A program made the position numbers and the translations under genes. From NCBI GenBank assembly GCA_002269645.1, contig NIVC01001182.1:186001-250000 (forward strand): a DNA stretch of 64,000 nt, written 5' to 3'. This stretch comes from Macrostomum lignano. Its lineage: Eukaryota. Below are positions 7,391 to 64,000 of the stretch, piece after piece; within the stretch, counting starts at the first letter, position 1; the number at the start of each line of letters is the position of its first letter. The notes below the pieces were generated by a model, which was not told where the DNA came from, did no database searches, and was given only the letters and a program-made list of their open reading frames with translations.

Positions 7391-10300
7391 ATGCACAGTG
7401 TGAAATATATTATTCTTCTTACTTTATTATGTTTAGTTTCTGACTCATTTTCTGATACCACGGAGCCCTTTGCGAGATTCGAGTACAAATTATCATTTAA
7501 AGGACCCTATCTGACCCAAAAGGATGGTTCTATTCCATTCTGGGAGTATGGAGGACGTAAGTTGTTTTTTTCAAACCATTTTATAAGTAAAGTTACTGTC
7601 CTACTGAATGCTTTTCATATAAGAAACAAAGATTAGTCTTGAAATTTTATTATGTCTTACAAAATTTTGGTAACTATATTTAAAAAGTGAATATTTCTAT
7701 CAGTACTAGTACTATACCTCACTAGTATGGTTTTTACTTGAAAAAGATTATACATTTTTAATTTTGTATTAAGACAATTTGTACAAATTCTATCCAGTGT
7801 TGGGGCTTTATAGCTTAGCACTGATATTTTTCTAGCTAATAAAAAAATTAAATTTAATTTACACAAGATAAAATTGAATTAGTTAACTTGTTATATTAAA
7901 GTTATTATTAAATTATAAGTACATACTTTGTACATTCAGAAGTTGTGTCTGTCATATTACTCTTTTTGAGTGCTACAATTTTTTGTTTGTATGGTTCGCA
8001 TTGCAAGGTTAAAAACTTTAGTCTTTAAACTCATAGTGTAATATTTCAATTGATAATAGAATCATTAATTTGCTATTTAATATTTGTACATATATTAAAT
8101 TAATAAATTAAAGCATTCCCAAATAATTTTCACTTTTCACAAAAATTTTGAATTTTAAAAACAAAAATTTTATCTTAATTTCAAAAAATTCTTTAAACAG
8201 ATGCCATCGCTGGTGACAGCTACATTCGCCTAACGCCGTCCATGTCTGGCAAACAAGGCCACGCCTGGACCAAAAAACTCGCCGATTTCGCCAACTTTCG
8301 TCTGGACATTGCTACTCGAGTTTCTGGCGTCGGTCGACACGGCGGAGACGGACTCGGCATCTGGTTTGTAGACGAGAAACCAGACTATAACTTGCCCAGC
8401 GTCCGGGTATTCGGTGGTGCCAGCAACTGGACAGGATTAGCTGTACTGCTGGACACCTACGATAATGATGGCAAAAATGACAATCCAAAGATTGGCGGCT
8501 TTGTTAGCTCTAATAAAGCCTTGGCTTGGAGTCACGACACTGACGGTCTCGACCAGGACATCGGCCACTGTCTGAGGAACTACCGGAATCGGCCTTTCCC
8601 CGTCCGGCTGAGGCTGCAGTACCTCAATAAGCGGCTGACGCTGCACGTTAACAATGGAGTGGCTAGCGAGGATAGCGAGAGCGACTATGAGGTGAGTCGG
8701 AGCGCCATGTCAATAATAATAATTAAATTGATTACACCTGCCCTAATGGGCAGATGTGCAACGTGCAACCGACAGCTCAACCGCAGCTATTGCGCGGCGC
8801 ATCTGACAGCTGCGTACGGCTGTTCAGTCCAAGGACTGGGGGGTCACCACAAACCCCCAATTACCCCAGCTAATACTGGTAACCATTTTACAGCTGAGTG
8901 AACTGAAGCAATGCAGAGTTAAGTGTGTAGTTCAAGGACACAAATTGTTCCAGTGGGATCGGGAATCGAACCCCCGACCTTCAAGTCGTAGTCCGATGCT
9001 CTAACCACTAGGCTACAACCCCCATGGTCAAACTGTCAGTATTAGCGCTAATTCAAACAAACTGTCAGTATAAGCGCCAAGTGAAACTGTCAGTATTAGC
9101 GCCATGCCAAACTGTCAGTATTAGCGCCATGCCAAACTGTCAGTATTAGCGCCATGCCAAACTGTCAGTATTAGCGCCAAGTCAAACTGTCAGTATTAGC
9201 GCCATGCCAAACTGTCAGTATTAGCGCCATGCCAAACTGTCAGTATTAGCGCCAAGTGAAACTGTCAGTATTAGCGCCATGCCAAACTGTCAGTATTAGC
9301 GCCAAGTCAAACTGTCAGTATTAGCGCCATGCCAAACTGTCAGTATTAGCGCCATGTGAAACTGTCAGAATGGGCGCCAGAGCCGACTACCCCCAACGCA
9401 CTGTTTTGCAGTTGTGCTTCGAGAAGGACAACGTTGAACTGCCAGGCAAAGGCTACTTCGGCGTCACGGCATCCACTGGCGGTGTGTCAGACGACATGGA
9501 CGTGTACAGCTTCGTGGTTCACTCGTTGTCAGTCAAAGGCGCAGCTGACCAAAGCGAAGCGGCCATCAAAGCCAGCGAAGAGGAGCGCAAGAAATACGAA
9601 CAGGAATACGAGGAGTATTCTAAGAAACTGCGCGATCAAATCGACGCCATCGCCAAGAGCCACAGGGAAGCCGTTGAAGGTCAAACTGGCTCGGGCGGCG
9701 ACGCGGGCAAGCCGGGCGATTCTGCGGTCGAAGATGAAGCCGCCAGGCAGTACCGGCAGATCTGGGAGGAGCAATCGAAGATCCGGGCTTCAATTCACGA
9801 CGTGGCCTCAGCGGTGGCCAATGCTAGGCACGACTTGGCTACCAGCATCACGGAGGTCACGCATTCTGTAGACGCAGTCAAAAGAGAATTGGCCGACGTG
9901 AAAACTGCCGCTAATGCGGCCGCTGGTGAGATACTACTCACATTGGGGTCTATACTAGTAGTATGATTGTATTTCCTCTGTTGATAATTAATTATGTTCA
10001 TTTTAAAAGTTCTCTCTCTCTCTCTCTCTTCATCTCCCTTCTTTCCTTTCCTTCTTTTTTATTAGCGGCAGGGGGCAGTGTGCACTGCATTGCTGCCCAT
10101 TCCGCCGACTCCCCTGAGCAGGCACACGAGCGCGCGGATACGTACGCACAGGCACACACTCACACAGGAGTGTACAGCGGCCCTAACTTTATTTATCGTT
10201 AGGCATGTACACTTCACTGCGCCTTGGGGGGTTGGCTCTCAAGGCCGTTAATTGCACGAGCATAGCGAACAGACACACGATAATCCATACAGACGCACGA

Positions 10301-13300
10301 TAATTCACATAGACACGATAATCCATACAGACGCACGATAAGTCACATAGACACGATAATCCATACAGACGCACGATAAGTCACATAGACACGATAATCC
10401 ATACAGACGCACGATAAGTCACATAGACACGATAATCCATACAGACGCACGATAATCCAGACAGACACACGATAATCCATACAGACACACGATAATCCAT
10501 ACAGACACACGATAATCCATACAGACACACGATAATCCATACAGACACACGATAAGTCACATAGACACGATAATCCATACAGACACACGATAATCCATAC
10601 AGACACACGATAATCCATACAGACACACGATAAGTCACATAGACACGATAATCATACAAACACACGATAATCCATACAGACACACGATAATCTACATCGA
10701 TACAGGACAATCCATACAGACACACGATAATCCATACAGACACACGATAATCCAGACAGACACACGATAATTCATACAGACACACGATAATCCATACAAA
10801 CACACGATAATCCATACAGACACACGATAATCCATACAGACACACGATAATCCATACAGACACAGGATAATCCACATAGACACACGATAATCCATACAGA
10901 CACACGATAATCCATACAGACACACGATAATCCATACAGACACACGATAATCCGTACAGACACACGATAATCCATACAGGCACAGGATAATCCACATAGA
11001 CACACGATAATCCATACAGACACACGATAATCCATACAGACACACGATAATCCATACAGACACACGATAATCCATACAGACACACGATAATCCATACAGG
11101 CACACGATAATCCATACAGACACACGATAATCCAGACAGACACACGATAATCTATACAAACACACGATAATCCATACAGACACACGATAAGTCACATAGA
11201 CACGATAATCCATACAGACGCACGATAAGTCACATAGACACGATAATCCATACAGACGCACGATAAGTCACATAGACACGATAATCCATACAGACGCACG
11301 ATAAGTCACATAGACACGATAATCCATACAGACGCACGATAAGTCACATAGACACGATAATCCATACAGACGCACGATAAGTCACATAGACACGATAATC
11401 CATACAGACGCACGATAATCCAGACAGACACACGATAATCCATACAGACACACGATAATCCATACAGACACACGATAATCCATACAGACACACGATAATC
11501 CATACAGACACTCGATAAGTCACATAGACACGATAATCCATACAGACACACGATAATCCATACAGACACACGATAATCCATACAGACACACGATAATCCA
11601 TACAGACACACGATAAGTCACATAGACACGATAATCCATACAAACACACGATAATCCATACAGACACACGATAATCTACATCGATACAGGACAATCCATA
11701 CAGACACACGATAATCCATACAGACACACGATAATCCAGACAGACACACGATAATTCATACAGACACACGATAATCCATACAAACACACGATAATCCATA
11801 CAGACACACGATAATCCATACAGACACACGATAATCCATACAGACACAGGATAATCCACATAGACACACGATAATCCATACAGACACACGATAATCCATA
11901 CAGACACACGATAATCCATACAGACACACGATAATCCATACAGACACACGATAATCCATACAAGCACAGGATAATCCACATAGACACACGATAATCCATA
12001 CAGACACACGATAATCCATACAGACACACGATAATCCATACAGACACACGATAATCCTTACAGACACACGATAATCCATACAGGCACACGATAATCCATA
12101 CAGACACACGATAATCCAGACAGACACACGATAATCTATACAAACACACGATAATCCATACAGACACATGATAAGTCACATAGACACGATAATCCATACA
12201 AACACACGATAATCCATACAGACACACGATAATCCAGACAGACACACGATAATTCATACAGACACACGATAATCCATACAAACACACGATAATCCATACA
12301 GACACACGATAATCCATACAGACACACGATAATCCATACAGACACACGATAATCCATACAGACACACGATAATCCATACAGACACAGGATAATCCATACA
12401 GGCACAGGATAATCCACATAGACACACGATAATCCATACAGACGCACGATAATCCATACAGACACACGATAATCCATACAGACGCACGATAAGTCACATA
12501 GACACGATAATCCATACAGACGCACGATAAGTCACATAGACACGATAATCCATACAGACGCACGATAATCCAGACAGACACACGATAATCCATACAGACA
12601 CACGATAATCCATACAGACACACGATAATCCATACAGACACACGATAATCCATACAGACACTCGATAAGTCACATAGACACGATAATCCATACAGACACA
12701 CGATAATCCATACAGACACACGATAAGTCACATAGACACGATAATCCATACAAACACACGATAATCCATACAGACACACGATAATCTACATCGATACAGG
12801 ACAATCCATACAGACACACGATAATCCATACAGACACACGATAATCCAGACAGACACACGATAATTCATACAGACACACGATAATCCATACAAACACACG
12901 ATAATCCATACAGACACACGATAATCCATACAGACACACGATAATCCATACAGACACAGGATAATCCACATAGACACACGATAATCCATACAGACACACG
13001 ATAATCTATACAGACACACGATAATCCATACAGTCACACGATAATCCATACAGACACACGATAATCCATACAGACACACGATAATCTATACAGACACACG
13101 ATAATCCATACAGTCACACGATAATCTATACGGACACACGATAATCTATACAGACACACGATAATCCATACAAACACACGATAATCCATACAGACACACG
13201 ATAATCCATACAGACACACGATAATCCATACAGACACACGATAATCCATGCAGACACAGGATAATCCATATAGACACACGATAATCCATACAGACACACG

Positions 13301-14743
13301 ATAATCCATACAGACACACGATAATCCATACAGACACAGGATAATCCATACAGACACACGATAATCCAGACAGACACACGATAATCCATACAGACACACG
13401 ATAATCTATACAAACACACGATAATCCAGACAGACACAGGATAATCCACACAGACACACGATAATCCATACAGACACACGATAATCCTGACAGACACAGG
13501 ATAATCCATACAGACATACGATAATCCATACAGACACACGATAATCTATACAGACACACGATAATCCATACAAACACACGATAATCCATACAGTCACACG
13601 ATAATCCATACAGACACACGATAATCCATACAGACACACGATAATCCATACAGACACACGATAATCCGTACAGACACACGATAATCTATACAGACACACG
13701 ATAATCCATACAGTCACACGATAATCCATACAGACACAGGATAATCCATGCAGACACACGATAATCCATACAGACACACGATAATCCATACAGACACACG
13801 ATAATCCATACAGACACAGGATAATCCATACAGACACATGATAATCCATACAGACACACGATAATCCATACAGACACACGATAATCTATACAAACACACG
13901 ATAATCCAGACAGACACAGGATAATCCACATAGACACACGATAATCCATACAGACACACGATAATCCTGACAGACACAGGATAATCCATGCAGACACACG
14001 ATAATCCATACAGACACACGATAATCTATACAGACACACGATAATCCATACAAACACACGATAATCCATACAGACACACGATAATCCATACAGACACACG
14101 ATAATCTATACAGACACACGATAATCCATACAAACACACGATAATCCATACAGACACAGGATAATCCATGCAGACACACGATAATCTATACAGACACACG
14201 ATAATCCATACAGACACACGATAATCTATACAGACACACGATCCCCTGATTCCACAAGCCAAGCTGAGATACCAATTCAGCCCCAAATTAATGTGACTGC
14301 ACTAGGAATCGAGCCTGGGCCGCTGGCACATGAGAGCGCCGCACTAGATCACTGGGCTACGGTCCCTATCATTCAAATAGACTAAATCAAACTAACAGTG
14401 TGGCACCAGTTACATAATTATCATCTAATCCCCAGCCGGCAGTAACAGCAAAGCCAGTGGAGGCAGTGCCGACGCTTACGCAGTCAAAGAGCTGCGCGAC
14501 ATCCTGACCAGGCTAGCTGACAAGGTGGACCATCTGACCAGCAGGCATTCGGAACTGTCCGAACGCGTTGGTCGATCTGTTCAGCTCAATCAGCAGAATT
14601 CCGGCTCACAGGGCGACCAGGCCTCATCAACCTGCGCGACCACCTATGGGCTCTACTGTGCCATTCTGCTACAGACTGCAGCCTTTGTCTGCCTGGGCAT
14701 GTTCTATTTGAAACGCCAAGATGCTGCTAAGAAGTTTTATTAA
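7391..14743 (+). CDS. LMAN1: ERGIC-53 / lectin mannose-binding 1 (L-type lectin cargo receptor), 4 exons, 492 aa
   Basis: Exons 7391-7556, 8201-8691, 9412-9925, 14436-14743 (1479 nt, in frame, all GT-AG). Signal peptide, RFEYKLSFKGP, GDGLGIWF, LDTYDND, GYFGVTASTGGVSDDMDV, coiled-coil stalk, Cys before the TM helix, and cytoplasmic tail KRQDAAKKFY*. Confidence 0.95.
8720..9023 (-). mobile_element. tRNA-derived SINE, family A, copy 2 (LMAN1 intron 2)
   Basis: A/B boxes (GTAGCCTAGTGGTTAGAGC; GGTTCGATTCCC), same central and 3' body as the other two copies, AT-rich tail. Confidence 0.85.
9030..9368. repeat. 25-bp minisatellite ACTGTCAGTATTAGCGCCATGCCAA
   Basis: About 13-14 copies, directly abutting the SINE head. 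Confidence 0.95.
10130..14365 (-). mobile_element. tRNA-derived SINE, family B, split by a 4-kb minisatellite
   Basis: 10130-10262 and 14250-14365 align colinearly with the two halves of the uninterrupted copy at 42960-43190. Confidence 0.8.
10268..14242. repeat. 20-bp minisatellite CACACGATAATCCATACAGA (with 18-bp variant), about 4 kb, LMAN1 intron 3
   Basis: About 200 units. Source of all the CLYGLSCVCMDYRVSVWIIV pseudo-ORFs. Confidence 0.99.
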
Positions 14744-16375: not shown

Positions 16376-16896
16376 TGTCCAGTATCCCTAATCTCACATT
16401 TAATCTCTTTTAATCCCACTTTGACTTTTGAGCCGCTAGTCAAAGAGTTTTAATTAATCTGTTTTGCCCTGTTGGTGGAAGGAGTTTATTTGCAAATGCA
16501 ATATTTTACTAGCAGTAGCTAGTAAATAGAAGTAAATATTAAAAAAATATTCTTCCATAATTTCATCGCTCTATCGTTTTAATAACCATAATTTCAATAA
16601 ATATGCGTCCTATGGCACACGCTTTGAAAATTGTGCAAGCCAAAACACGGTTGAGTCACAGCGACCAATCAAGAAATGTTCCAGGAAAAGATTGCTGAAA
16701 GCAGAAATTACTTTCTTCTTAATTTATTTCTTGCTTTGATAAAACTGGACTGCTTCTTGACAGATTTATTGCTTCGAAATCTTTCATTCAAGAGAGCAAT
16801 CATTCCTTGAGATGACGGGGCATCAAATTTTGGGCTCAATCGCGTTTTAGGCGATTATTTTATTGATTTTTCAATTTCACTTGCCACGACCGCGGC

Positions 16897-16903
16897 TATA
16901 AAA
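16897..16903 (+). promoter_or_regulatory. Candidate TATA box (TATAAAA)
   Basis: GCGGCTATAAAATG lies ~100 nt upstream of a strong donor G|GTGAG at 17000, the first of a chain of putative + strand exons. Inference only. Confidence 0.3.
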
Positions 16904-17049
16904 TGCTGGGACTTCGGTGCAGACTCCAGGAAAATTGCAAGGAAATTATTTTGCTAAGACTGGCTTCTGTTTCTTTGAGACACGCACTGAAGACTGAGGG
17001 TGAGCTGTGCTTACGGATACGCTTGAGTGTTTATGTGGCTATAACAGCC

Positions 17050-18290
17050 CGCCTCTCACCCCTCACTAGCCCTCTCTCACCCCCCGTTCCCCCTTCTCGT
17101 TCCTCTCTTTCAGCCTCTCTTTCCCCTCTTCTCTCCTCCTTCCCCTCTCTCACCCTCTCCTTCCCCTCTTCTCCTCTCATTCTCCTCTCCTTCCCCTCTC
17201 TCACCCTCTCCTTCCCCTCTTCTCCTCTCATTCTCCTCTCCTTCCCCTCTCTCACCCTCTCCTTCCCCTCTCTCACTCTCTCCTTCCCCTCTCTCACCCT
17301 CTCCTTCCCCTCTTCTCCTCTCATTCTCCTCTCCTTCCCCTCTCTCACCCTCTCCTTCCCCTCTCTCACTCTCTCCTTCCCCTCTCTCACCCTCTCCTTC
17401 CCCTCTTCTCCTCTCATTCTCCTCTCCTTCCCCTCTCTCACCTTCTCCTTCCCCTCTCTCACTCTCTCCTTCCCCTCTTCTCCTCTCATTCTCCTCTCCA
17501 TCCCCCTCTCACCCTCTCCATCCCCTCTTTCACCCTCTCTTTCCCCTTTTCTAATCTCCTTCCCCTCACCCTCTCCATCCCATTTCTCACCCTCTCCTCC
17601 CCACTCCCACCCCTCTTTCCTCTCTCTCACCCTCTCGTTCCCCCTCCCACCCTCTCGTTCCCCCTCCCACCCTCTCGTTCCCCTCCCACCCTCTCGTTCC
17701 CCCTCCTTCATCTCCCTCCTCTCGTTCTCTCGTTCCTCGTTTCTCGTTTCTCGATCCTCTCGTTCCCCTCCCACCCTCTCGTTCCCCTCCCACCCTCTCG
17801 TTCCCCCTCCCACCCTCTCGTTCCCCCTCCCACCCTCTCGTTCCCCCTCCCACCCTCTCGTTCCCCCTCCCACCCTCTCGTTCCCCCTCCCACCCTCTCG
17901 TTCCCCTCCCACCCTCTCGTTCCCCCTCCCACCCTCTCGTTCCCCCTCCCACCCTCTCGTTCCCCCTCCCACCCTCTCGTTCCCCCTCCCACCCTCTCGT
18001 TCCCCCTCCCACCCTCTCGTTCCCCCCCACCCTCTCGTTCCCCCTCCCACCCTCTCGTTCCCCCTCCCACCCTCTCGTTCCCCTCCCACCCTCTCGTTCC
18101 CCTCCCACCCTCTCGTTCCCCCTCCCACCCTCTCGTTCCCCCTCCCACCCTCTCGTTCCCCCTCCCACCCTCTCGTTCCCCCTCCCACCCTCTCGTTCCC
18201 CCTCCCACCCTCTCGTTCCCCCTCCCACCCTCTCGTTCCCCCTCCCACCCTCTCGTTCCCACTCCCACCTTTTTTCCTCACTTTCACCAT
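17050..18290. repeat. CT-rich low complexity plus ~21-bp repeat CCCCTCCCACCCTCTCGTTCC
   Basis: Direct reading. ORFs 16903-18342 and 17031-18290 are artefacts of it. Confidence 0.95.
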
Positions 18291-18414
18291 TTTCCCCTCT
18301 CTTACCAGACTCTTCTTGTCTGGTCTTCACCACATATATTGAATCCACATTTACATATCCTGCAGGTAACTGAGCCACAAATAAACAAATAAGATAGTCA
18401 ATTAACGCCAACAG

Positions 18415-18785
18415 CGTCGTGACTTCAAGCCAATCGAGACACTTCAAAAGCCCCAACGGCGCCATGTCTCACGCTGATTCAAACCCAGCCAAATCGATGA
18501 AATTTTCTTCAACGCTTCAAGCCATTTGTCCACAGTGTCCTTTGTTCCCTATGTCTACCTGTGCCAGCACTGGCTACCCCTGTTCAGCGGCTACCTTCAG
18601 TAGCGAGTCACAGCAGCACGGATTGATCTGCAGTGCCGCTGCAGCCGCCGCGGCCGCAGCTGCCGCCGCCGCTGCAGCAACCAGCTGGGCCAGAAGTAGC
18701 GGTGAGCAGACTGACAATCCAAATCATGCCCGCTGCTGCTCCTGCTCTGAAGAGTCTGCAAATTTGGCTCAGGATTTCAAGATTT
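18415..18785 (+). CDS. Putative coding exon with a poly-Ala tract (ATG 18464), possibly the 5' exon of the downstream homeobox gene
   Basis: Acceptor CCAACAG at 18414, GCCATG at 18464, GC-rich non-repetitive ORF with a 14-Ala run, and donor T|GTGAGT at 18786 (phase 1). Confidence 0.45.
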
Positions 18786-18859
18786 GTGAGTACTTGAGAG
18801 TATAATTTTGCAGCTGCTTAAAATAATGGGGGATTTTGTGTTTTTTATATGGTGCATTT

Positions 18860-19730
18860 TGGTTTTGGTACATTAGTATTGTGGTTTCGGTACAGGGTAT
18901 TGTGGTTTCGGTACAGGGTATTGTGGTTTCTGTACAGGGTATTGTGGTTTCGGTACAGGGTATTGTGGTTACGGTACAGGGTATTGTGGTTACGGTACAG
19001 GGTATTGTGGTTTCTGTACAGGGTATTGTGGTTTCTGTACAGGGTATTGTGGTTTCTGTACAGGGTATTGTGGTTTCGGTACAGGGTATTGTCGTTACGG
19101 TACAGGGTATTGTGGTTTCTGTACAGGGTATTGTGGTTTCGGTACAGGGTATTGTGGTTTCGGTACAGGGTATTGTGGTTTCGGTACAGGGTATTGTGGT
19201 TTCGGTACAGGGTATTGTGGTTTCGGTACAGGGTATTGTGGTTTCGGTACAGGGTATTGTGGTTTCGGTACAGGGTATTGTGGTTACGGTACGGGGTATT
19301 GTGGTTTCGGTACAGGTATTGTGGTTTCGGTACAGGGTATTGTGGTTTCGGTACAGGGTATTGTGGTTTCGGTACAGGGTATTGTGGTTTTGGTACATTG
19401 GTATTGTGGTTTCGGTACAGGGTATTGTGGTTTCGGTACAGGGTATTGTGGTTTCGGTACAGGGTATTGTGGTTTCTGTACAGGGTATTGTGGTTACGGT
19501 ACAGGGTATTGTGGTTTCTGTACAGGGTATTGTGGTTTCGGTACAGGGTATTGTGGTTACGGTACAGGGTATTGTGGTTACGGTACAGGGTATTGTGGTT
19601 TCGGTACAGGGTATTGTGGTTTCGGTACAGGGTATTGTGGTTTCGGTACAGGGTATTGTGGTTTCGGTACAGGGTATTTTGGTTTCGGTACAGGGTATTG
19701 TGGTTTCGGTACAGGGTATTGTGGTTTTGG
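18860..19730. repeat. 21-bp minisatellite GGTACAGGGTATTGTGGTTTC
   Basis: About 41 copies. Confidence 0.98.
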
Positions 19731-20239
19731 TGTAAAGATGTTTATCGCATAATAATTTTTTAGTTTTTTATTCTTATGCCCAGAATAGAGCCAAGCTTAG
19801 AGCGCAAGTTGCGCGATTGCATTTTGTATAGCAATATATTTCAAACAAAAAGTTTCTATGAAACAGTGAATATGCTCGGGCCCAGATCGATAATCCTTAA
19901 TTTAATGAGGATACGCTCGTAAAAATTTAAAACAAAGAAAAGTTTATAAAATGGGAATAATATTTATTCGGTTTTTGCATAAAACTAAATTTTTAATTCT
20001 TGGGGCGATCGAAGCCATGAGGTAGACAATTAAGTTTAAATATCCGTAAGATTAATAGCGATGGGCATGTTATCGTTTCTGAATCAACTACTGAGAGTGT
20101 GAGTAGTAGCGGATGGCAAGTGAAAAATTATTCTACAAAAACACAGATTCATATTATCAGGGATTAAATGTTTTGCGATGAAGATTAAAAAGCATTCCTT
20201 AGCGACCTGTTACCACCGAATAGATGTAACATTCCTGCA

Positions 20240-22170
20240 GTCAATCAGATAAACTTTCCAATCAAACAGTTGACATTCCAATCAAACAGGTGACATTCCA
20301 ATCAAGCAGATAAACATTCCAATCAAACAGGTGACATTCCAATCAAACAGGTGAACATTCCAATCAAACAGGTAAACATTTCAATCAAACAGATAAACAT
20401 TCCAATCAAACAGACAAACATTCCAATCAAACAGGCGACATTCCAATCAAACAGATAAACATTCCAATCAAACATATAAACATTCCAATCAAACATATAA
20501 ACATTCCAATCAAACAGATAAACATTTCAATCAAACAGGTGACATTCCAATCAAACAGATAAAGATAAACATTCCAATCAAACAGGTAAACATTCCAATC
20601 AAACAGATAAACATTCCAATCAAACAGATAAAGATAAACATTCCAATCAAACAGGTAAACATTCCAATCAAACAGATAAACATTCCAATCAAACAGATAA
20701 AGATAAACATTCCAATCAAACAGATAAAGATAAACATTCCAATCAAACAGATAAAGATAAACATTCCAATCAAACAGGTAAACATTCCAATCAAACAGAT
20801 AAACATTCCAATCAAACAGATAAAGATAAACATTCCAATCAAACAGATAAAGATAAACATTCCAATCAAACAGGTAAACATTCCAATTAAACAGATAAAC
20901 ATTCCAATCAAACAGATAAAGATAAACATTCCAATCAAACAGATAAAGATAAACATTCCAATCAAACAGATAAAGATAAACATTCCAATCAAACAGGTAA
21001 ACATTCCAATCAAACAGATAAACATTCCAATCAAACAGATAAAGATAAACATTCCAATCAAACAGATAAAGATAAACATTCCAATCAAACAGATAAACAT
21101 TCCAATCAAACATATAAACATTCCAATCAAACATATAAACATTCCAATCAAACAGATAAACATTTCAATCAAACAGGTGACATTCCAATCAAACAGATAA
21201 AGATAAACATTCCAATCAAACAGGTAAACATTCCAATCAAACAGATAAACATTCCAATCAAACAGATAAACATTCCAATCAAACAGATAAAGATAAACAT
21301 TCCAATCAAACAGATAAACATTCCAATCAAACAGATAAAGATAAACATTCCAATCAAACAGATAAACATTCCAATCAAACAGATAAACATTTCAATCAAA
21401 CAGATAAACATTTCAATCAAACAGATAAACATTCCAATCAAACATATAAACATTCCAATCAAACAGATAAACATTCCAATCAAACAGATAAACATTTCAA
21501 TCAAACAGATAAACATTTCAATCAAACAGATAAACATTTCAATCAAACAGATAAACATTTCAATCAAACAGATAAACATTTCAATCAAACAGATAAACAT
21601 TTCAATCAAACATATAAACATTTCAATCAAACAGATAAACATTCCAATCAAACAGATAAACATTCCAATCAAACAGATAAAGATAAACATTCCAATCAAA
21701 CAGATAAACATTCCAATCAAACAGATAAAGATAAACATTCCAATCAAACAGATAAACATTCCAATCAAACAGATAAACATTCCAATCAAACAGATAAACA
21801 TTTCAATCAAACAGGTGACATTCCAATCAAACAGATAAAGATAAACATTCCAATCAAACAGGTAAACATTCCAATCAAACAGATAAACATTCCAATCAAA
21901 CAGATAAAGATAAACATTCCAATCAAACAGATAAAGATAAACATTCCAATCAAACAGATAAACATTCCAATCAAACAGGTAAACATTCCAATCAAACAGA
22001 TAAACATTCCAATCAAACAGATAAACATTTCAATCAAACAGATAAACATTCCAATCAAACAGGTTAACATTCCAATCAAACAGATAAACATTCCAATCAA
22101 GCAGTTGACATTCCAATCACACAGGAAACGTTCCAATCAAACAGGTGACATTCCAATCAAACAGGTAACA
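20240..22170. repeat. 21-bp minisatellite AAACATTCCAATCAAACAGAT with 27-bp (AAAGAT insertion) and CAGGTGACA variants
   Basis: About 85 copies. Confidence 0.98.
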
Positions 22171-22781
22171 TTCTAACAGGTAAACAGGTAAAACTCCAAT
22201 AAAAATTATGATTACAATCAAACACAGGTACAATCAAACAGGTACACTGAGTCTCCAAACTTAAGAAAACATCCCTACTAATGGCGCTTGTGTAATGTAA
22301 ATGAAGCAAGTTGTTTTCAATACAAACAAAAGCAAAAACAGTACTCAATAATAGCAGGAAAAAGCATGATGCAATAATGTCAATAATAAAAAAGTGACTA
22401 AGTTTTGCGGGCAAAGTGCAGTTCTGTGTGTTTACAATTTAACGACACAATTACCAAGGACCACTGTACGAGATTATTTTTCCATCAAACTTTTAATTCC
22501 TTTGTTTTTTCTTTCCCATCACAAAACCAATGATTGCATTCAAGTAACACGCTGTTCACGCTAAATTAAAGGAATGGTAATCACCTTCACTGGCCCGGAT
22601 CAAATTAAAATCATTAACAGCATCTTTGAGCTTTACGTCCAGTTATACCACAGAGGTCCTTGGCAAATTCAACAAAATAATACGAGGTCAAATATAGATT
22701 GAAATGGTTTCATCTCCTGTCAGTCTGCCAGTCATGCTGCTGTTTGGAACTGCTTCCAGTAAAGTAAACCGTTTGCCCGCT

Positions 22782-48432
<25,651 letters not shown>

Positions 48433-49389
48433 GTTGTGTTGCTTGCAGCACTGTAATTTTCTACTTCTTCAAGCCTTTCGTAACAAGAATCTGTCGTCTT
48501 AAAATTCTAGTTGGCTTAACAGCTGTCAAGAACTGTCAACACACAGACCAGCGTCCAGATGTAGTAGAGACAGACCTAAATAAATGTCAGTTCACTTTTC
48601 AAGTACTGTCCCAGCCGAGCCTCCGTCTGTACTCCAACCGTACTTCCAAGTTGAGACCGAGTTATTCGAGGACCGAACAAGACTGCTTGCTTGCTGTAAC
48701 AACAGAATGGCACAAACAGTGTTAGGCGAAGCGTTTTATATAACAACTGCGGTTCTCTCCTTTCTTAGTCTTGGACTGTTCGTCAGGCACAAGCAGCGCA
48801 AGAAGGGGTGCCATGCAGTCAGACCGAACCCTCTTAGGCAAAACCCTCAACCCGTGCGCTGGAGAGAGTCTGCCAGAGATAGATGACGAATCAGCTGCAG
48901 GCTGGGGTGGGGTGGGCGGCAACTGCTATTGGAACCGTTTTTAGACGTGAAATAAGAAAGAAAAGGGAGAGAAAGATATGGAGGATTTTTTATAAGATAC
49001 TATACAGTACAAGCAATTGTTCAGATTCAAAAAACAAATAGCTCGGACTATGATTACTAATACTAATAGTATGCATTCACTAAGGTTTAATAAACTACTA
49101 AATTGTTTAATTTCACCGTCCGTACCTTAAAGTGCAGCGTCTATAGAAATGCGCAGTTTAATGTGCAGTTCGTATTATCTAAGATCTGATAGTCAACTGC
49201 AGTACGGCGATGATATGCAAACTTGTGACGAAGGCCTCTGATAAACCATAATTTGTTATCGAATATTGTACTATAGCATGCTACGGGTATATATGGGTGT
49301 CTTAAAATCGTGCACATATATAGAAATAATTGGCTGTTAGTTAGTTAGTTAGGGAGATAGTTAGGGTGAAAGTTGCATAGGTCACCTTA

Positions 49390-50990
49390 AGACAGGAGTG
49401 TCACCTGTTAGACAGGAGTGTCACCTGTTAGACAGGAATATCACCTGTTAGACAGGTGTGTCACCTGTTAGACAGGATAATGTCACCTGTTAGACAGGAG
49501 TGTCACCTGTTAGACAGGTGTGTCACCTGTTAGACAGGATAATGTCACCTGTTAGACAGGAGTGTCACCTGTTAGACAGGAGTGTCACCTGTTAGACAGG
49601 AGTGTCACCTGTTAGACAGGAGTGTAACCTGTTAGATAGGAGTGTCACCTGTTAGACAGGATAATGTCACCTGTTAGACAGGAGTGTCACCTGTTAGACA
49701 AGAGTGTCATCTGTCAGACAGGAGTGTCACCTGTTAGACAAGAGTGTCACCTGTTAGACAGGAATATCACCTGTTAGACAGGAGTGTCACCTGTTGGACA
49801 GGAGTGTCACCTGTTAGACAGGAATATCACCTGTTAGACAGGAGTGTCACCTGTTAGACAGGAGTGTCACCTGTTAGACAGGAATGTCACCTGTTAGACA
49901 GGAGTGTCACCTGTTAGACAGGAATTTCACCTTTTAGGCAGGAGTGTCACCTGTTAGACAGGAGTGTCACCTGTTAGACAGGAATATCACCTGTTAGACA
50001 GGAGTGTCACCTGTTGGACAGGAGTGTCACCTGTTAGACAGGAATATCACCTGTTAGACAGGAGTGTCACCTGTTAGACAGGAGTGTCACCTGTTAGACA
50101 GGAATGTCACCTGTTAGACAGGAGTGTCACCTGTTGGACAGGAGTGTCACCTGTTAGACAGGAGTGTCACCTGTTGGACAGGAGTGTCACCTGTTAGACA
50201 GGAATATCACCTGTTAGACAGGAGTGTCACCTGTTAGACAGGAATTTCACCTGTTAAACAGGAATTTCACCTGTTAGACGGGAGTGTCACCTGTTAGACA
50301 GGAGTGTCACCTGTTAGACAGGAATATCACCTGTTAGACAGGAGTGTCACCTGTTAGACAGGAGTGTCACCTGTTAGACAGGAATATCACCTGTTAGACA
50401 GGAGTGTCACCTGTTAGACAGGAATGTCACCTGTTAGACAGGAGTGTCACCTGTTAGACAGGAATATCACCTGTTAGACGGGAGTGTCACCTGTTAGACA
50501 GGAATTTCACCTGTTAGACAGGAATTTCACCTGTTAGACAGGAATTTCACCTGTTAGACGGGAGTGTCACCTGTTAGACAGGTGTGTCACTGGTTAGACA
50601 GGTGTGTCACTGGTTAGACAGGAGTGTAACCTGTTAGATAGGAGTGTCACCTGTTAGACAGGAGTGTCACCTGTTAGACAGGTGTGTCACTGGTTAGACA
50701 GGAGTGTAACCTGTTAGACAGGAGTGTCACCTGTTAGACAGGAATATCACCGGTTAGACAGGAGTGTCACCTGTTAGACAAAAGTGTCACCTGTTAGACA
50801 GGATAGCGTCACATGTTAGACAGGATAGCGTCACATGTTAGACAGGATAGCGTCACATGTTAGACAGGATAGCGTCACATGTTAGACAGGATAGCGTCAC
50901 ATGTTAGACAGGATAGCGTCACATGTTAGACAGGATAGCGTCACATGTTAGACAGGATAGCGTCACATGTTAGACAGGATAGCGTCACAT
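49390..50990. repeat. 20-bp quasi-palindromic minisatellite ACAGGAGTGTCACCTGTTAG, ending in a 22-bp derivative ACATGTTAGACAGGATAGCGTC
   Basis: About 70 plus 9 copies. Confidence 0.98.
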
Positions 50991-51194
50991 TGTTATATGT
51001 CACTGGTGTCACCTCGAGATGCGTAAAACCGAAAATTCATAAAAGTTAAACTACCCGTCATGTTAATAACTTTTTTTAATTATCGCACGGTTTGCTACTT
51101 ACAGTAGGCTTGTAAGTACATGGCGCAGGTACTTAAGATCGAGTCAGATTTTTAACGAAACAAAACAATTCCATCAATAATCACCACTCTCCAG

Positions 51195-51556
51195 CACAGT
51201 CGGATCCCAGAAGGTGCACAGAGGTCAAAAGCGAGGCGGCAGATCCTAAAACCGGACAACCTCATCATCAGCAGCAGATTCTGTGGTCAGGCAAGAGTCA
51301 ATCAGGCACCAGCAGCCACCTGCAGTATCAACAACAGGCAGTCGTGAAAATCAGACGACAAAGAACTAACTACAGTCGCCTGCAATTGTTGGAACTTGAA
51401 AAAGAATTCCACTTCACCAAATACCTGACTAGAGCCAGAAGAAGGGAGCTGGCAGACAGTCTTCAGGTGACGGAGAGGCACGTGAAGATTTGGTACCAGA
51501 ACCGGCGGATGCGCTGGAAAAAGGAGCAGCGGCAGCAGCAGCAGCAGCAGATATGA
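51195..51556 (+). CDS. ANTP-class (Hox/ParaHox-like) homeobox exon; homeodomain at 51350-51529
   Basis: [60 protein letters not shown]. The frame is open from acceptor CCAG at 51194 (phase 1) to TGA at 51556; AATAAA at ~51704. Confidence 0.9.
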
Positions 51557-51719
51557 TTTATTTGATCGCTAAAGTAGCTCGATGGACAGGACAGAGGAAT
51601 TGTTATTTTAGGTCATAAATTATCTAAATACCATCAGCTGAGCTTCCAGTTTGAAAATCAAACATTTTTTCAAAAAAAAAATATTAAAAATGTGAAATTT
51701 TTGAATAAATTTCACAAGC

Positions 51720-54565
51720 ACCAGTGCCTTAAGCACCAGGGTCTTTAGCACCAGTGCCTTTAGCACCAGGGGCTTTAGCAACCAGGGGCTTTAGCAACCA
51801 GGGGCTTTAGCAACCAGGGGCTTTAGCACCAGAGGCTTTAGCACCAGGGGCTTTAGCACCAGGGGCTTTAGCACCAGGGCTTTAGCACCAGGGCTTTAGC
51901 ACCAGGGGCTTTAGCACCAGTGGCTTTAGCACCAGTGGCTTTAGCACCAGTGGCTTTAGCACCAGGGGCTTTAGCACCAGTGCCTTTAGCACCAGTGCCT
52001 TTAGCACTAGGGGCTGGGCTTTAGCATCAAGGGCTTTAGCACCAGTGCCTTTAACACCAGTGCCTTTAGCACCAGTGCCTTTAGCACCAGGGGCTTTAGC
52101 ATCAAGGGCTTTAGCACCAGTGCCTTTAACACCAGTGCCTTTAGCACCAGTGCCTTTAGCACCAGGGGCTTTAGCATCAAGGGCTTTAGCACCAGGGGCT
52201 TTAGCATCAGGGGCTTTAGCACCAGGGGCTTTAGCACCAGGGGCTTTAGCACCAGTGGCTTTAGCACCAGGGGCTTTAGCACCAGTGGCTTTAGCACCAG
52301 GGGCTTTAGCACCAGGGCTTTAGCATCAGGGGCTTTAGCACCAGAGGCTTTAGCACCAGGGGCTTTAGCACCAGGGGCTTTAGCACCAGGGCCTTTAGCA
52401 CCAGGGGCTTTAGCATCAGTGGCTTTAGCACCAGTGGCTTTAGCACCAGGGGCTTTAGCACCAGTGGCTTTAGCACCAGTGGCTTTAGCACCAGTGGCTT
52501 TAGCACCAGGGGCTTTAGCACCAGTGCCTTTAGCACCAGTGCCTTTAGCACTAGGGGCTGGGCTTTAGCATCAAGGGCTTTAGCACCAGTGCCTTTAACA
52601 CCAGTGCCTTTAGCACCAGTGCCTTTAGCACCAGGGGCTTTAGCATCAAGGGCTTTAGCACCAGTGCCTTTAACACCAGTGCCTTTAGCACCAGTGCCTT
52701 TAGCACCAGGGGCTTTAGCATCAAGGGCTTTAGCACCAGGGGCTTTAGCACCAGGGGCTTTAGCACCAGGGGCTTTAGCACCAGGGGCTTTAGCACCAGG
52801 GGCTTTAGCACCAGTTTAGCACTTTAGCACCAGGGGCTTTAGCACCAGGGCCTTTAGCACCAGGGGCTTTAGCACCAGGGCTTTAGCACCAGGGCTTTAG
52901 CATCAGTGGCTTTAGCACCAGGGCTTTAGCACCATGGGCTTTAGCACCAGGGGCTTTAGCACCAGGGCTTTAGCATCAGGGGCTTTAGCACCAGTGGCTT
53001 TAGCACCAGTGGCTTTAGCACCAGTGGCTTTAGCACCAGTGGCTTTAGCACCAGGGGCTTTAGCACCAGTGCCTTTAGCACCAGTGCCTTTAGCACTAGG
53101 GGCTGGGCTTTAGCATCAAGGGCTTTAGCACCAGTGCCTTTAACACCAGTGCCTTTAGCACCAGTGCCTTTAGCACCAGGGGCTTTAGCATCAAGGGCTT
53201 TAGCACCAGTGCCTTTAACACCAGTGCCTTTAGCACCAGTGCCTTTAGCACCAGGGGCTTTAGCATCAAGGGCTTTAGCACCAGGGGCTTTAGCACCAGG
53301 GGCTTTAGCACCAGGGGCTTTAGCACCAGGGGCTTTAGCACCAGGGCTTTAGCATCAGTGGCTTTAGCACCAGGGGCTTTAGCACCATGGGCTTTAGCAC
53401 CAGGGGCTTTAGCACCAGGGCTTTAGCATCAGGGGCTTTAGCACCAGTGGCTTTAGCACCAGTGGCTTTAGCACCAGTGGCTTTAGCACCAGTGGCTTTA
53501 GCACCAGGGGCTTTAGCACCAGTGCCTTTAGCACCAGTGCCTTTAGCACCAGGGGCTGGGCTTTAGCATCAAGGGCTTTAGCATCAAGGGCTTTAGCACC
53601 AGGGGCTTTAGCATCAAGGGCTTTAGCACCAGTGGCTTTAGCACCAGGGCTTTAGCACCAGGGGCTTTAGCATCAAGGGCTTTAACACCAGTGGCTTTAG
53701 CACCAGGGCTTTATCACCAGTGCCTTTAGCACTAGGGGCTGGGCTTTAGCATCAAGGGCTTTAGCACCAGGGGCTTTAGCATCAAGGGCTTTAGCACCAG
53801 TGGCTTTAGCACCAGGGCTTTAGCACCAGGGGCTTTAGCATCAAGGGCTTTAACACCAGTGGCTTTAGCACCAGGGCTTTAGCACCAGTGCCTTTAGCAC
53901 TAGGGGCTGGGCTTTAGCATCAAGGGCTTTAGCACCAGGGGCTTTAGCATCAAGGGCTTTAACACCAGTGGCTTTAGCACCAGGGCTTTAGCACCAGTGC
54001 CTTTAGCACTAGGGGCTGGGCTTTAGCATCAAGGGCTTTAGCACCAGGGGCTTTAGCATCAAGGGCTTTAGCACCAGTGGCTTTAGCACCAGGGCTTTAG
54101 CACCAGGGGCTTTAGCATCAAGGGCTTTAACACCAGTGGCTTTAGCACCAGGGCTTTAGCACCAGTGCCTTTAACACCAGTGCCTTTAGCACCATTGCCT
54201 TTAACACCAGTGCCTTTAGCACCAGTGCCTTTAGCACCAGGGGCTTTAGCATCAAGGGCTTTAGCACCAGGGGCTTTAGCACCAGGGGCTTTAGCACCAG
54301 GGGCTTTAGCACCAGGGGCTTTAGCATCAGGGGCTTTAGCACCAGTGGCTTTAGCACCAGGGGCTTTAGCACCAGTGGCTTTAGCACCAGGGCTTTAGCA
54401 TCAGTGGCTTTAGCACCAGTGCCTTTAGCACCATGGGCTTTAGCACCAGGGGCTTTAGCACCAGGGCTTTAGCATCAGTTGCTTTAGCACCAGTGCCTTT
54501 AGCACCATGGGCTTTAGCACCAGGGGCTTTAGCACCAGTGCCTTTAGCACCAGGGGCTTTGGCAC
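51720..54565. repeat. 15-bp minisatellite GCTTTAGCACCAGGG with higher-order structure
   Basis: About 190 copies. Source of the LKPLV/ALAPG pseudo-ORFs. Confidence 0.99.
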
Positions 54566-55292
54566 CAAGAGTGTCAGCACTAAACGGCCCCCAGCGCCAG
54601 AACCCTGAGTGAGCGTGTCAGATACGGCCTCTGTCCTCTGAAAACGAACTACACTGTAGTAGCTTACCATAGTACTAATCTGTTTTTTAGTTAGACGCAA
54701 TACAGTTTCGCATGCATAATATTGAATCTGGAAGTTGAGGTGAGGTGAACCATATTGCCCAGCCAGAGCTAAAACTGAAAGCTTAAAATGCCGCCAGGTC
54801 TGACAATGACATGTAATAATTAGTAATCCATGAAGTGTCTAAGAAATTTCCTGCAGTATATAAAAACTCTAACAAAACGCGAATCAACTACTTGCAGTTC
54901 TGATACTAGCAATAAAACTACAGTATATATTACGCAAATTAACTGACCAAATATAATATGTACATCCCGCGCAAGCGTATTCCTGCAAACTAACCATGAG
55001 CTGTAATAACATTGATTTTGCTTTAATGTTAACGTTTTGATTGGCAAATATCAAATTTAAACCACTTGTTACAGAAGGGAATTTTTTATTTAACGAATTA
55101 ATATTTGTTAAACAATGAAATTTACATCTAATAAACTCACTTATACTTGTAATTATTGTTACATTCAATAACTTATAAGTCACATTAAAATTGAACTTGT
55201 ACACAAATAATTATATAAATAAACAAATACAGACATTACGCTCATATTTAAAAATGTCACAATGTCCTTTTGTTCGCGAATCTCAACCCAGC

Positions 55293-58200
55293 TCAGATGG
55301 ACTTCAACAACTGCGCCGCTTCATCTCTTGACTGAAAGAAAAACAAAATTTGAATAAAATGATTTGTTTCAAAAAGATCAAAACAGCAAATTAAAACAAA
55401 CCTGTTTGTCGTCAACCGTGTCGCCCTTATAATTGACAGTTCTCTGCAGATAAGTCCGCGCATTGGTCCTGTCACCTTTGCGCAGGTAGGCTTTGCCGAT
55501 GTACAGCAAACTGCTGCTGTAGAAATTCGGGTCAACTGAAATTGAAAAGTGACTGTTGATTAGGGTCAAATTAAAAACTAATTCTATAGATTTTAGGTCA
55601 CTGAGTCTCAGAAGACAACCTACGCTTCCGGTTAGTATATACAGGAACCTATACTTCCGGTTAGAATATACAGACAACCTACACTTCCGGTTAGTATATA
55701 CAGACAAACTACGCTTCCGGTTAGCATATACAGACAACCTACACTTCCGGTTAGTATATAGACACCCCTCACTTCCGGTAAGTATAGAAAACCTACACTT
55801 CCGGTAAGTATAGAAAACCTACACTTCCGGTTAGTACATACAGACAACCTGCACTTCCGGTTAGCATATACAGACAACCTACACTTCCGGTTAGTATATA
55901 GACACCCCTCACTTCCGGTAAGTATAGAAAACCTACACTTCCGGTTAGTACATACAGACAACCTGCACTTCCGGTTAGTATATACAGACAACCTACACTT
56001 CCGGTTAGTATATACAGACAACCTACACTTCCGGTTAGTATATACAGACAACCTACACTTCCGGTTAGTATATACAGACAACCTACACTTCCGGTTAGTA
56101 TATACAGACAACCTACACTTCCGGTTAGTATATAGACACCCCACTTCCGGTAAGTATAGAAAGCCTACACTTCCGGTAAGTATAGAAAACCTACACTTCC
56201 GGTTAGTATATACAGACAACCTGTTGCGTAGGCTTTGTATTTTATGTTTCGTTGTTAGTTATAGTTGTAGGTCTCATTTTAGTATATCGACGATATGTAC
56301 GTCTCCGGGCCCCGCCCCCCATTATCGCTTAGTGTACATGCAATCTCAGCCCCACCCCAATCTTTTGTGTGTCATTTAGCAGTTAAATATAAAAGGAACG
56401 ATGGCTTGAATTTGTTCGTGAGAGTGCGTTGTGGCAATAGTCAAAAACCTGCCGAGAGTTTGAACAAAAGTTATTTGTCTTTAGAACATAAATCTGGTAG
56501 CAGAGCGTGGTTGTGAAATCGAATGTCATTCGGAGACGAAAAGGCTGCGGATGCAGCAGCGGCAGCAGCAACAGCATCAGCATCTGAGCGAAATCAAGAG
56601 AGATCGGAATCGGAGCAACGAGTGGTGCAACTGAAGGGCAAAAAGGCTGTCGAAAAATGTGCCTTCACTAAGCAGCGAAACAAGCTACTCAAGTACCCCG
56701 ACTCGGACGGCGTGACACTGGAGGGCGCGGAGAGAGATGGTCATCAGAGAGAGTTAGAGGCCGCAAAGTGTCAGAAAGCTGAACTGGAAGAGCGTCAACA
56801 GCGGTTGAGAGAAACATTTGAGGCTAAGCAAAAGGAGTTGGAGTATGAAATGGAGAGGCTAGACAGAGTGGTTGGAGTTCAGCGGCAGCAAGTTCAGTCG
56901 CGAAGTGTACACGAAGCGCGTGAGGAGTCGCAAACTACGGGGGAGGGGTGGCAACCCAAAGAGTGGCCAATCAACAATCCAGGCTGGCGGCCAACCCCAA
57001 TTAGCGAAATGTACACTGCGCGTACTGGCCCGGCTGGAGTTAGCGCAAACGAAAGGCCTAGGCAATTTGAGTCAGAGTGGCGGGCTGGCCTATCATTTGG
57101 CGGAGCAGGGCAGGCGGCGGCAATGTACGCAGAGGATCAGTCAGCTAGGATTGGACAGGACATGTGGCGACAATTGCAGCGTGTGTCTATTCCTGTGTTC
57201 TCAGGAGACAAGCGGCAGTATGAGGGGTGGAAGGCTGCCTTCTATGCATGTGTGGATGAGTCGCCGGCTTCAGACGCGAACAAGTTGTTGCAGCTGCGTC
57301 AATCCCTGCAAGGGGAGGCACTTAAGCTTATTGTGAATTTAGGGTTCTCGGCTTTCGCCTACCGGTCTGCACTAGTGCCACTAGAGCGTTTAGAGCGAGA
57401 GTACGGTGGAGAGAGACGCAGATTAACGTTAGCTCTGGAAGACTTGGACAATTTTCGGCCGATTCAGACGGAGAGTGCAGCGCAGTTAAAAAAGTTGGCA
57501 GACCTGTTGGATGTGACCGTGAATAATTTGAAGGCGGCTGGGCGTGACGTTGAGCTAAGTAGCAATGGCCTGTTACATTTGCGCGTTCAGCGGAAGCTGC
57601 CCGCAGACACCTTGGCGCGCTATCACCGGTGGGTGGGCGAGAACTCTAAAGTAGATTCGCTGAGTGTGCTCCATCAGTGGTTGTTACAGGAGGCTGAATA
57701 TCGGACGATTGCGTGGGAGGCGACGCGAGGAGTGGTACCGGTGAGCGATGGCGGTCGGGAAGCTGGAAGAAGTGGTCAGGGTCTCGTGAACCACAGCGAA
57801 CACTGTTCATTCACAACGACGCCGCTGAAAGTCGCAGTGTCGAACCAACAGACAACCGTAGGTTATGTCGTCTCTGTGGAGAGCAGCATGGAGTGTGGGC
57901 GTGCCCTAGGTTTGCGCGTATGGATGTTGAAGCTCGATGGGCAGCGGTACGCGAGTGGAAGCTGTGCTTTGGGTGCTTGGGAAGCAACCACATGAGTTTG
58001 TCGTGCAGACGATTGCGAAGCTGCGGCATCGACGGGTGCAAGGCCAGGCATCACCGGCTGCTCCACCAAGCGCAAAAGAGTGAGTCGATGGCACGCCACG
58101 AAGGGGGGATGCAGAAGGTCCTCAAGGCGCCAAGTTCAGGCGAGAGGCCGAAGGAGACGATGAACAAGCAGCGAGAAGCCTGTACTTTGCTAGTTAGGGA

Positions 58201-63881: not shown

Positions 63882-64000
63882 AAAAGCAGTTTAAACAGAG
63901 TTTTTTGCATTTATTATTATCACTATCAGTAATTTTTTATAATAATTGATAATGAGAAACTATAACTATAAAAAAACTTCAAGGTACCATATTTCCATAG

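Follow-up and report, generated by a model that had tools for sequence, protein, structure and literature searches.

A 64,000-nucleotide (nt) window of the genome of the flatworm Macrostomum lignano (contig NIVC01001182.1 of assembly GCA_002269645.1, positions 186,001 to 250,000 of the forward strand; coordinates below are those of the window) carries on its plus strand a Hox-like homeobox exon (51195-51556) and, far upstream, a probable coding exon (18415-18785), and between the two, on the minus strand, a whole NELL gene. The analysis shows the two exons with their splice signals and phases, and establishes which gene NELL is and where it lies; that the exons are joined we infer from the agreement of their phases, and we give this reading a probability of roughly 0.35. 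If the join is correct, the intron of the homeobox gene would extend from 18786 to 51194 on the plus strand (32,409 nt) and would hold the NELL gene in antisense orientation, the coding sequence of which (48432-22785) lies wholly inside these limits.

That the downstream exon encodes a real homeodomain is beyond doubt. The 119-residue peptide translated from 51197-51556, which terminates at a TGA (51554-51556), matches the Pfam model PF00046 (Homeodomain) far above chance and over its full length (profile positions 1-57; 74.2 bits against a cut-off of 22.9, E=7.1e-21). The domain occupies residues 53-109 (51353-51523), with R5, L16, F20, W48, Q50, N51 and R53 intact; positions 8 and 49 hold Y where F is expected, the F49-to-Y change being conservative, and the other core residues (L16, F20, W48, N51, R53) are present. 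The stop-to-stop open reading frame (ORF) of the exon, 51137-51553, is open for 139 codons, and its sole Met falls in helix 3 (NRRMRWKK). Codon bias is specific to the homeodomain frame (0.194, against -0.035 and -0.274 in the other two), and an AATAAA at 51704-51709, likely the poly(A) signal of the homeobox mRNA, lies 148 nt past the stop, just before a minisatellite at 51717-54567. Because the codon bias is frame-specific, the key residues are intact and AATAAA is in place, we argue that the homeobox gene is functional.

The exon boundary is less simple, in that two acceptors lie 5 nt apart. The acceptor CTCCAG/CAC at 51195 (a slash marks the splice junction) is in phase 1, with two bases preceding the first full codon; it follows 45 nt that are free of AG, fits the published [T/C]TNCAG motif and scores 6.8 with splice matrices trained on 12 introns of NELL, within the range of the 12 real NELL acceptors (5.1-13.5). 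The second, CACAG/TCG at 51200, is in phase 0 and scores 2.8, below all 12. The G+C fraction (GC) is 0.53 after 51195 as compared to 0.37-0.39 before it. An earlier note on this DNA had described an exon that has no usable ATG and starts at a phase-1 acceptor, and both properties are evident, since the sole Met lies in helix 3 and the AG at 51195 is in phase 1. If 51195 is used, its phase therefore calls for a coding exon upstream.

The best-ranked database matches of the homeobox peptide are Hox1/labial-type homeodomains (58-71% identity), and nearly all the matches listed are Hox-type; no close relative was found in 5.8 billion clusters. In pairwise comparison with the homeodomains in the supplement of Currie et al. 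2016 (PMC4815179), used here as the Hox/ParaHox set, identity is highest to Smed-Hox4a (68%) and Smed-Lox5a (67%), reaches 63% to each of M. lignano Hox1 (over 60 residues), Hox3 and Hox8, and lies between 60 and 68% for the Hox homeodomains compared, with the exception of M. lignano Hox7 (53%), as against 46-52% for Cdx, Eve, Gsx and Post2, which bears out the earlier suggestion that the homeobox is Hox-like. The related premise that Hox genes are compact is weak for flatworms, whose Hox cluster is disrupted. By pairwise identity the homeobox is nearly equidistant from Hox1, Hox3, Hox4, Lox5, Antp and Hox8. It carries both of the Hox-type marks Q50 and ELEKEF, and combines Hox1 marks (YLTRARR) with central-class marks (LTER.,.WKKE). 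A canonical hexapeptide ([YF][PD]WM[KR]) is found in neither exon, the nearest strings being ILWSGK in the homeobox exon and TSWARS in the upstream exon; the 64-kb window contains no second homeobox, and no linkage to other Hox genes is seen within it; and the gene is not among the M. lignano Hox/ParaHox transcripts given by Currie et al. 2016 (PMC4815179), a transcript-based list. From these sequence features we call it an uncatalogued, divergent and fast-evolving HOXL (ANTP-class) gene to which no paralogue group can be assigned. The name Hox1 was rejected on the grounds that the homeobox is equidistant from several classes and the hexapeptide is missing.

The coding sequence of the intervening gene runs on the minus strand from an ATG at 48432 (Met1) to a stop at 22785, a distance of 25.6 kb, in at least 16 coding blocks. 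When its Cys-rich ORFs were crudely joined and used as a query, the top match was the M. lignano protein P0121 of UniRef, 'Protein kinase C-binding protein NELL2' (88%, E=0), followed by NELL1/2 of arthropods, molluscs and deuterostomes at 28-41% (35-41% over the full query for arthropods and molluscs; E down to 1e-133). In the reverse direction, tblastn of P0121 against the window gave blocks 90-100% identical, most of them 96-100%, and one partly overlapping block at 84%. Pfam finds EGF_CA and VWC domains, and 12 introns could be placed exactly, all of them GT-AG and 311-5570 nt in length. By these matches the minus-strand gene is M. lignano NELL2 itself, an orthologue of NELL1/2, and the window is DNA of M. 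lignano or of a nearly identical strain. No contig record encoding P0121 was found.

Three details of this gene deserve mention in their own right. The NELL exon at 40423-40458 (minus strand) has a run of C5 where the UniRef NELL2 implies C6, …CCCTGCCCCC(C)GGTCACG…, shifting the frame in a VWC-domain exon; either the assembly has a homopolymer error here or, the genome being duplicated, this copy truly carries the frameshift. The UniRef model in turn appears to be mispredicted twice, at 24757-25068 and 33010-33306 (minus strand), where the end of an EGF exon is skipped and other sequence is read where the genome offers Cys-rich, VWC-like ORFs. Finally, NELL is probably trans-spliced to the spliced leader, because an acceptor AAAATTACAG/TGC 17 nt upstream of its ATG (48433-48460, minus strand) fits the M. 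lignano trans-splice motif [T/C]TNCAG; the AUG of a leader joined there would open a short out-of-frame ORF (MCCKQHK and a stop).

The upstream exon begins at an acceptor AACAG/C (18414/18415), has an ATG at 18464 in a GCCATG context, and continues for 107 codons and one base to a phase-1 donor, TTT/GTGAGT, at 18785/18786. This donor scores 0.8 (69th percentile), as compared to 9.0, on the matrix trained on 12 NELL donors, for an alternative donor GCG/GTGAGC at 18701/18702, likewise in phase 1. Within the exon lies a run of 15 alanine codons at 18635-18679 (GCC GCT GCA GCC GCC GCG GCC GCA GCT GCC GCC GCC GCT GCA GCA), in which all eight of the eight departures from GCC fall at the third base, an outcome with a probability of about 1.5e-4 if substitutions were equal over the three positions; variation confined to the third base of Ala codons is the usual look of a translated plus-strand poly-Ala tract. 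With codon log-odds trained on 1,639 local codons, the exon scores 0.237 per codon in its own frame (the other two give -0.146 and 0.003) and exceeds all 65 control ORFs (mean -0.22, standard deviation 0.18, maximum 0.20), the top-scoring of which is a LINE-like fragment. Without the alanines the score is 0.14; for the stretch bounded by the two donors it is 0.367. The length of the ORF (107 codons) is not above chance, the longest control ORF having 142 codons. At both splice boundaries GC falls sharply, from 0.55 inside the exon to 0.34-0.35 on either side.

Upstream of this exon are signals consistent with a promoter and a short 5' leader assembled by cis-splicing. A TATA-like box CTATAAAAT at 16896-16904 in a GC-rich context (ccgcggCTATAAAAtgctgg) is the putative promoter; a putative non-coding exon 1 (16927-16999, its start guessed at about 30 nt past the TATA box) ends in a donor AGG/GTGAGC (score 7.8, 96.8th percentile); a CT-rich minisatellite (17087-18269) occupies the following intron; and a putative non-coding exon 2 (18309-18365) is bounded by an acceptor TTACCAG/A (7.7) and a donor CAG/GTAACT (8.2). 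The resulting 179-nt spliced 5' leader contains no ATG, a property seen in 6% of shuffles. The 49-nt putative intron that follows, 18366-18414, holds an AATAAA at 18380-18385, 30 nt before the 18415 acceptor; the pair resembles an operon junction, and the 18415 exon might open a trans-spliced downstream cistron. Because of the third-base variation of its GCN codons, its codon score, its GC boundaries and the ATG-free leader, the upstream exon appears to be translated on the plus strand, and we regard it as probably a real coding exon. Other readings of this region fare poorly. A minus-strand reading was rejected, as codon scores are about zero and the NGC codons on that strand would translate into a mixture of Ser, Cys, Gly and Arg; an unspliced 113-residue product ending at the TAA at 18806 is unlikely, with no AATAAA or ATTAAA for 1.35 kb downstream and with GC falling at 18786; and membership of these 16.9-18.8 kb exons in the coding region of the neighbouring ERGIC-53 gene is ruled out by the position of the last ERGIC-53 exon, at 14429-14740 in a scan of plus-strand ORFs of at least 45 codons over 14-51.2 kb.

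Joining 18785 to 51195 yields an open product of 227 residues, and splicing from the 18701 donor one of 199 residues. The two sides of the join agree in phase 1, as do both upstream GTGAG donors, an agreement expected by chance one time in three. No other non-repeat plus-strand ATG-ORF was found upstream of the homeobox with a GTRAG donor, a compatible phase and any coding signal. Over the 2.76 kb that separate the homeobox exon from the NELL ATG there is no non-repeat ATG-ORF with a GTRAG donor in either phase, a scan of 48433-51194 for any GT donor returned weak local candidates only, and the ORF scan of 14-51.2 kb gave no convincing additional plus-strand coding exon. Between 18786 and 22198, that is, for 3.4 kb past the upstream exon, AATAAA is not found. 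Poly-Ala N-terminal arms are also seen in the Hox1 and Cdx2 transcripts of M. lignano. Much of what the earlier note had proposed about this arrangement thus stands: the GCCATG start at 18464, the presence of a TATA-like box and of signals for two short 5' exons, the position of NELL antisense between two plus-strand exons, the choice of 18415-18785 as the best upstream partner in the window, the open 227-residue product, and the caution that phase agreement is a 1-in-3 event. The alanine run numbers 15 and not 14 as had been counted, and the donor at 18785, described as a strong phase-1 site, is in phase 1 with a matrix score of 0.8.

Under the proposed join, the likeliest of the readings though held with low confidence, transcription would start at the TATA promoter near 16.9 kb and proceed through two short non-coding exons; translation would begin at ATG 18464, in a Ser/Ala/Cys-rich exon with its 15-alanine tract; and cis-splicing in phase 1 of either donor (18785 or 18701) onto the strong 51195 acceptor would give a homeodomain transcription factor of 227 (or 199) residues. 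The whole of NELL (25.6 kb) would then sit, on the other strand, within the 32.4-kb intron. A short isoform initiated by a spliced-leader AUG at the tandem acceptor might coexist with the long-intron form.

A number of observations weigh against such a join. Mean intron length in M. lignano is 0.98-1.4 kb, and an intron of 32,409 nt would be about 30 times the species mean. As many as 28 of the 2,255 plus-strand AG sites scored around the stretch outscore 51195, and the first good acceptor, at 19784, is 1 kb from the donor and brings an immediate stop, followed by ATTAAA. The 18785 donor is poor on its exon side (TTT), the first 57 codons of the upstream exon show no codon bias (0.024), and the 107-residue upstream peptide has no homologue (0 matches with HMMER among 1.84 billion representatives). 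The hexapeptide is not canonical, TSWA and ILWS being all that is present; none of five candidate products (227, 199, 119, 121 and 113 residues) is on record in protein collections by exact look-up; the accessible collections gave no transcript, annotated protein or homologue that bears on the junction; and a leader AUG would provide an in-frame start with no upstream exon at all. The homopolymer frameshift of NELL relative to the UniRef model also means that phase arguments that turn on a single base are not fully safe in this assembly.

What, then, would become of the two exons if they were not joined? For the upstream exons alone, there is somewhat less than an even chance that they form a separate small orphan gene, in which the 18785 or 18701 donor is spliced to 19784 to give a poly-Ala protein of 107 or 80 residues; such a gene would account for the upstream part alone and could go with any of the alternatives for the homeobox exon. 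The acceptor TTATGCCCAG/AATAG at 19784 scores 7.0 (98.1st percentile), on par with 51195, and would open a possible AT-rich terminal exon (19784-20200) with ATTAAA at 20163 and 20184, after either of which the mRNA would end. The 997-nt intron would hold a minisatellite (18856-19731), a size and build like those of the verified NELL introns; T+AA from the 18785 donor, or G+AA followed by TAG, stops translation immediately; and ATTAAA seemingly also serves NELL, the 3' region of which has no TTTATT. Such signals are, however, expected by chance at a GC of 0.33, a poly-Ala protein with no recognisable domain or homologue would be odd, and the phase match to the homeobox exon would be a 1-in-3 coincidence. 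For the homeobox exon, the chief alternative is that the spliced leader supplies the start. The M. lignano leader, 35 nt of CGGTCTCTTACTGCGAAGACTCAATTTATTGCATG, ends in …TTGCATG and prefers the acceptor [T/C]TNCAG (PMC8629364), and 30-39% of genes of the species receive it (PMC8629364, PMC5730564). Every reported flatworm leader ends in AUG, and in Schistosoma mansoni 28% of trans-spliced mRNAs have the leader AUG in frame, with more than 40 cDNAs that need it as initiator (Cheng et al. 2006 via PMC9851317, PMC12582326). In such a species an acceptor-bounded exon lacking an ATG does not need an exon upstream, because the leader can supply the AUG: trans-splicing to 51199/51200 after removal of the outron would place that AUG in frame with the homeodomain and start a 119-residue protein (MSDPRR…), from a promoter of its own within or just upstream of 49.4-51.2 kb, leaving NELL as a divergent neighbour and the 18.4-18.8 kb exon as part of another gene. 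No 32-kb intron would be required, and the TTACAG acceptor of NELL, 17 nt before its ATG, shows that this layout is usual locally. It depends, though, on the weaker second AG, whose score of 2.8 falls short of every one of the 12 verified acceptors; joining the leader at the motif-matching AG of 51195 would shift its AUG out of the homeodomain frame and yield a 51-codon ORF with no homeodomain. As AGs 5 nt apart can compete, the weakness of 51200 does no more than lower the weight of the leader reading. Obligatory use of the leader AUG is a minority case; the 119-residue protein is not in the collections; and a probably coding, phase-matched orphan exon would be left with no explanation. Neither an SL RNA gene nor other bearing RNA is found in the window (Rfam, 0 matches; ARAGORN, one pseudo-tRNA). 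Overall we judge the leader reading unlikely, if far from negligible. A rough likelihood argument, in which a 30-kb intron has a low prior and an obligatory leader AUG a modest one, and which also takes in the dearth of a decent local exon, the phase-matched, probably coding orphan exon and the acceptor strengths, puts it within a factor of two of the nested-NELL arrangement, with a ranking that flips with the prior on intron length.

Less favoured explanations look for the start nearby or do away with it. An ATG at 51120 could be the start if a three-codon mini-exon ATGGCGCAG (51120-51128, plus strand) were spliced to 51200 across a 71-nt intron, giving an open frame of 121 residues, or if the T5 run at 51149-51153 were truly T6, through a deletion in the assembly or a polymorphism, one extra T fusing this ATG to the homeobox ORF in an uninterrupted frame of 145 residues with no intron. 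A TATA-like CATAAAAG stands about 70 nt upstream, and the same kind of homopolymer difference (C5 versus C6) occurs in a NELL exon of this window. Nevertheless, the mini-exon donor CAG/GTACTT scores 0.6 (66th percentile) and departs from GT[G/A]AG, the motif of 65% of donors in M. lignano (PMC8629364), and the spliced version requires the weaker 51200 acceptor. A T occupies position -3 of the ATG, and 51120-51194 looks intronic or untranslated, with a GC of 0.39 against 0.53 in the exon and a third-position value (GC3) of 0.66 in local coding sequence, all of which leaves a local ATG improbable. No better placed is a missed upstream coding exon, for which two plus-strand ORFs come into question: 19 codons at 49278-49335 with donor GCT/GTTAGT (score 2.0), and 10 codons at 46165-46195 with donor TGT/GTGAGC (3.0). 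Each has a usable donor in phase 1, GTTAG also occurs at one verified NELL donor, and an intron of 49336-51194 would show the local layout of unique sequence, minisatellite (49381-50979) and unique sequence. Against this, both ORFs are tiny and carry no coding signal, their donors score just 2.0 and 3.0, the 49336 donor belongs to a (GTTA)4 microsatellite, and those M. lignano Hox and ParaHox transcripts that were read here (Currie et al. 2016, PMC4815179) have long N-terminal arms, so that we give this explanation little credence. We hold it similarly doubtful that the homeobox exon is an orphaned copy, a partial Hox-like duplicate with no first exon, untranslated or decaying. The M. lignano genome is recently duplicated, and the gene is missing from the transcript-based Hox list of Currie et al. 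and from protein collections; yet the 139-codon frame is open with key homeodomain residues intact, the codon bias is frame-specific, and acceptor and AATAAA are both in place. The collections are, moreover, incomplete for this species, the local ERGIC-53-like lectin also being unmatched at a strict E<=1e-20.

The remainder of the window is occupied by other genes and by repeats. Upstream of the putative promoter, an ERGIC-53/LMAN-like L-type lectin gene extends over 7379-14740 on the plus strand, with Lectin_leg-like exons at 7379-7633, 8197-8700 and 9390-9930, a last exon (14429-14740) that encodes a transmembrane segment and a …KKFY tail before the stop, and an intron in which a 20-mer is repeated about 200 times over 4 kb (10269-14242). 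A multi-exon rhodopsin-family G-protein-coupled receptor gene lies at the left end (1104-3592, plus strand), next to a (TAC)n array of about 800 nt at the very edge (1-800), and a homologue of RMD1-3 (regulator of microtubule dynamics protein 1-3, TPR) at the right end (63228-63890, minus strand). Between the homeobox and the latter is a plus-strand BEL/Pao long terminal repeat (LTR) retrotransposon (56283-62830) with a gag-like ORF (DUF1759), a 1,328-codon pol ORF (RVT_1, Peptidase_A17, integrase) and a DUF5641 tail; direct repeats at 56283 and 62599 encode the same ORF and are probably its LTRs. Most introns and spacers are filled by minisatellite arrays, at least 25 in all (period 15-42, up to 200 copies), those of period 15-30 occurring in nearly every one and typically leaving 50-200 nt of unique sequence beside each splice site; in the genome as a whole, tandem repeats make up 15% (PMC5730564). 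ARAGORN reports one degenerate tRNA-like element (27321-27395, plus strand), and similar pieces lie near 2050-2140, 8940-9000, 14300-14380, 43070-43240 and 45100-45210. Because several ORF translations share tRNA-arm-like strings (…ESNPGP…, …GIEPGPLA…), a dispersed family of tRNA-derived short interspersed elements (SINEs) is suggested for the window.

Regardless of how its transcript begins, a divergent Hox-like homeobox gene is added to the M. lignano complement, outside the published transcript-based list. For gene models in trans-splicing flatworms, the locus is also a reminder that an exon with no ATG does not imply an exon upstream. Were the long intron real, the locus would be an extreme and lopsided host-nested pair for a compact-intron genome, in which a developmental transcription factor is transcribed antisense through a whole neural signalling gene, and transcriptional interference between the patterning gene and NELL would be likely. 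Were the leader to provide the AUG, the product would be a homeodomain protein that takes its initiator from a spliced leader. Nested antisense genes, a disrupted flatworm Hox cluster and initiation at a leader AUG are each already known, and the interest of the locus is local to flatworm genomics.

Among known systems, one close comparison for the protein is M. lignano Hox1 (two transcripts in Currie et al. 2016, PMC4815179), with which the homeobox shares a 16-letter protein stretch and Q50, and the N-terminal arm of which contains a poly-Ala tract like that of the proposed upstream exon. The present gene differs from Hox1/labial in its central-class LTERH and RWKKE and in the Y at positions 8 and 49, and it is without the hexapeptide, PFKWMEIKR, that M. 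lignano Hox1 possesses. The ILW…KS motif that precedes the homeodomain by 21 residues bears a loose resemblance to LYSWMNPKSG of Smed-Lox5a, but it is degenerate and would lie in the homeodomain exon itself, a non-canonical layout, and orthology to Smed-Hox4a or Smed-Lox5a cannot be assigned. With flatworm mRNAs that initiate at the leader AUG, the locus has in common a leader ending in AUG, a recipient exon with no ATG and an available in-frame acceptor; here, however, of two AGs separated by 5 nt it is the weaker one that would put the AUG in frame. The NELL gene departs from NELL1/NELL2, as represented by the UniRef model, in a one-base homopolymer frameshift in one exon and in two differently predicted exons. 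Host-nested pairs are themselves well known, as in OMG, EVI2A and EVI2B, which lie in an intron of NF1 on the opposite strand. The likeness, if the join is real, is that NELL would lie wholly antisense within a single intron, and donor and acceptor phases are indeed compatible, with the guest wholly between them. The proportions are different: the host here would be small (about 0.7 kb of coding sequence), the guest 25.6 kb long with at least 16 coding exons, and this guest would fill about 80% of its intron in a genome where the mean intron is 1 kb.

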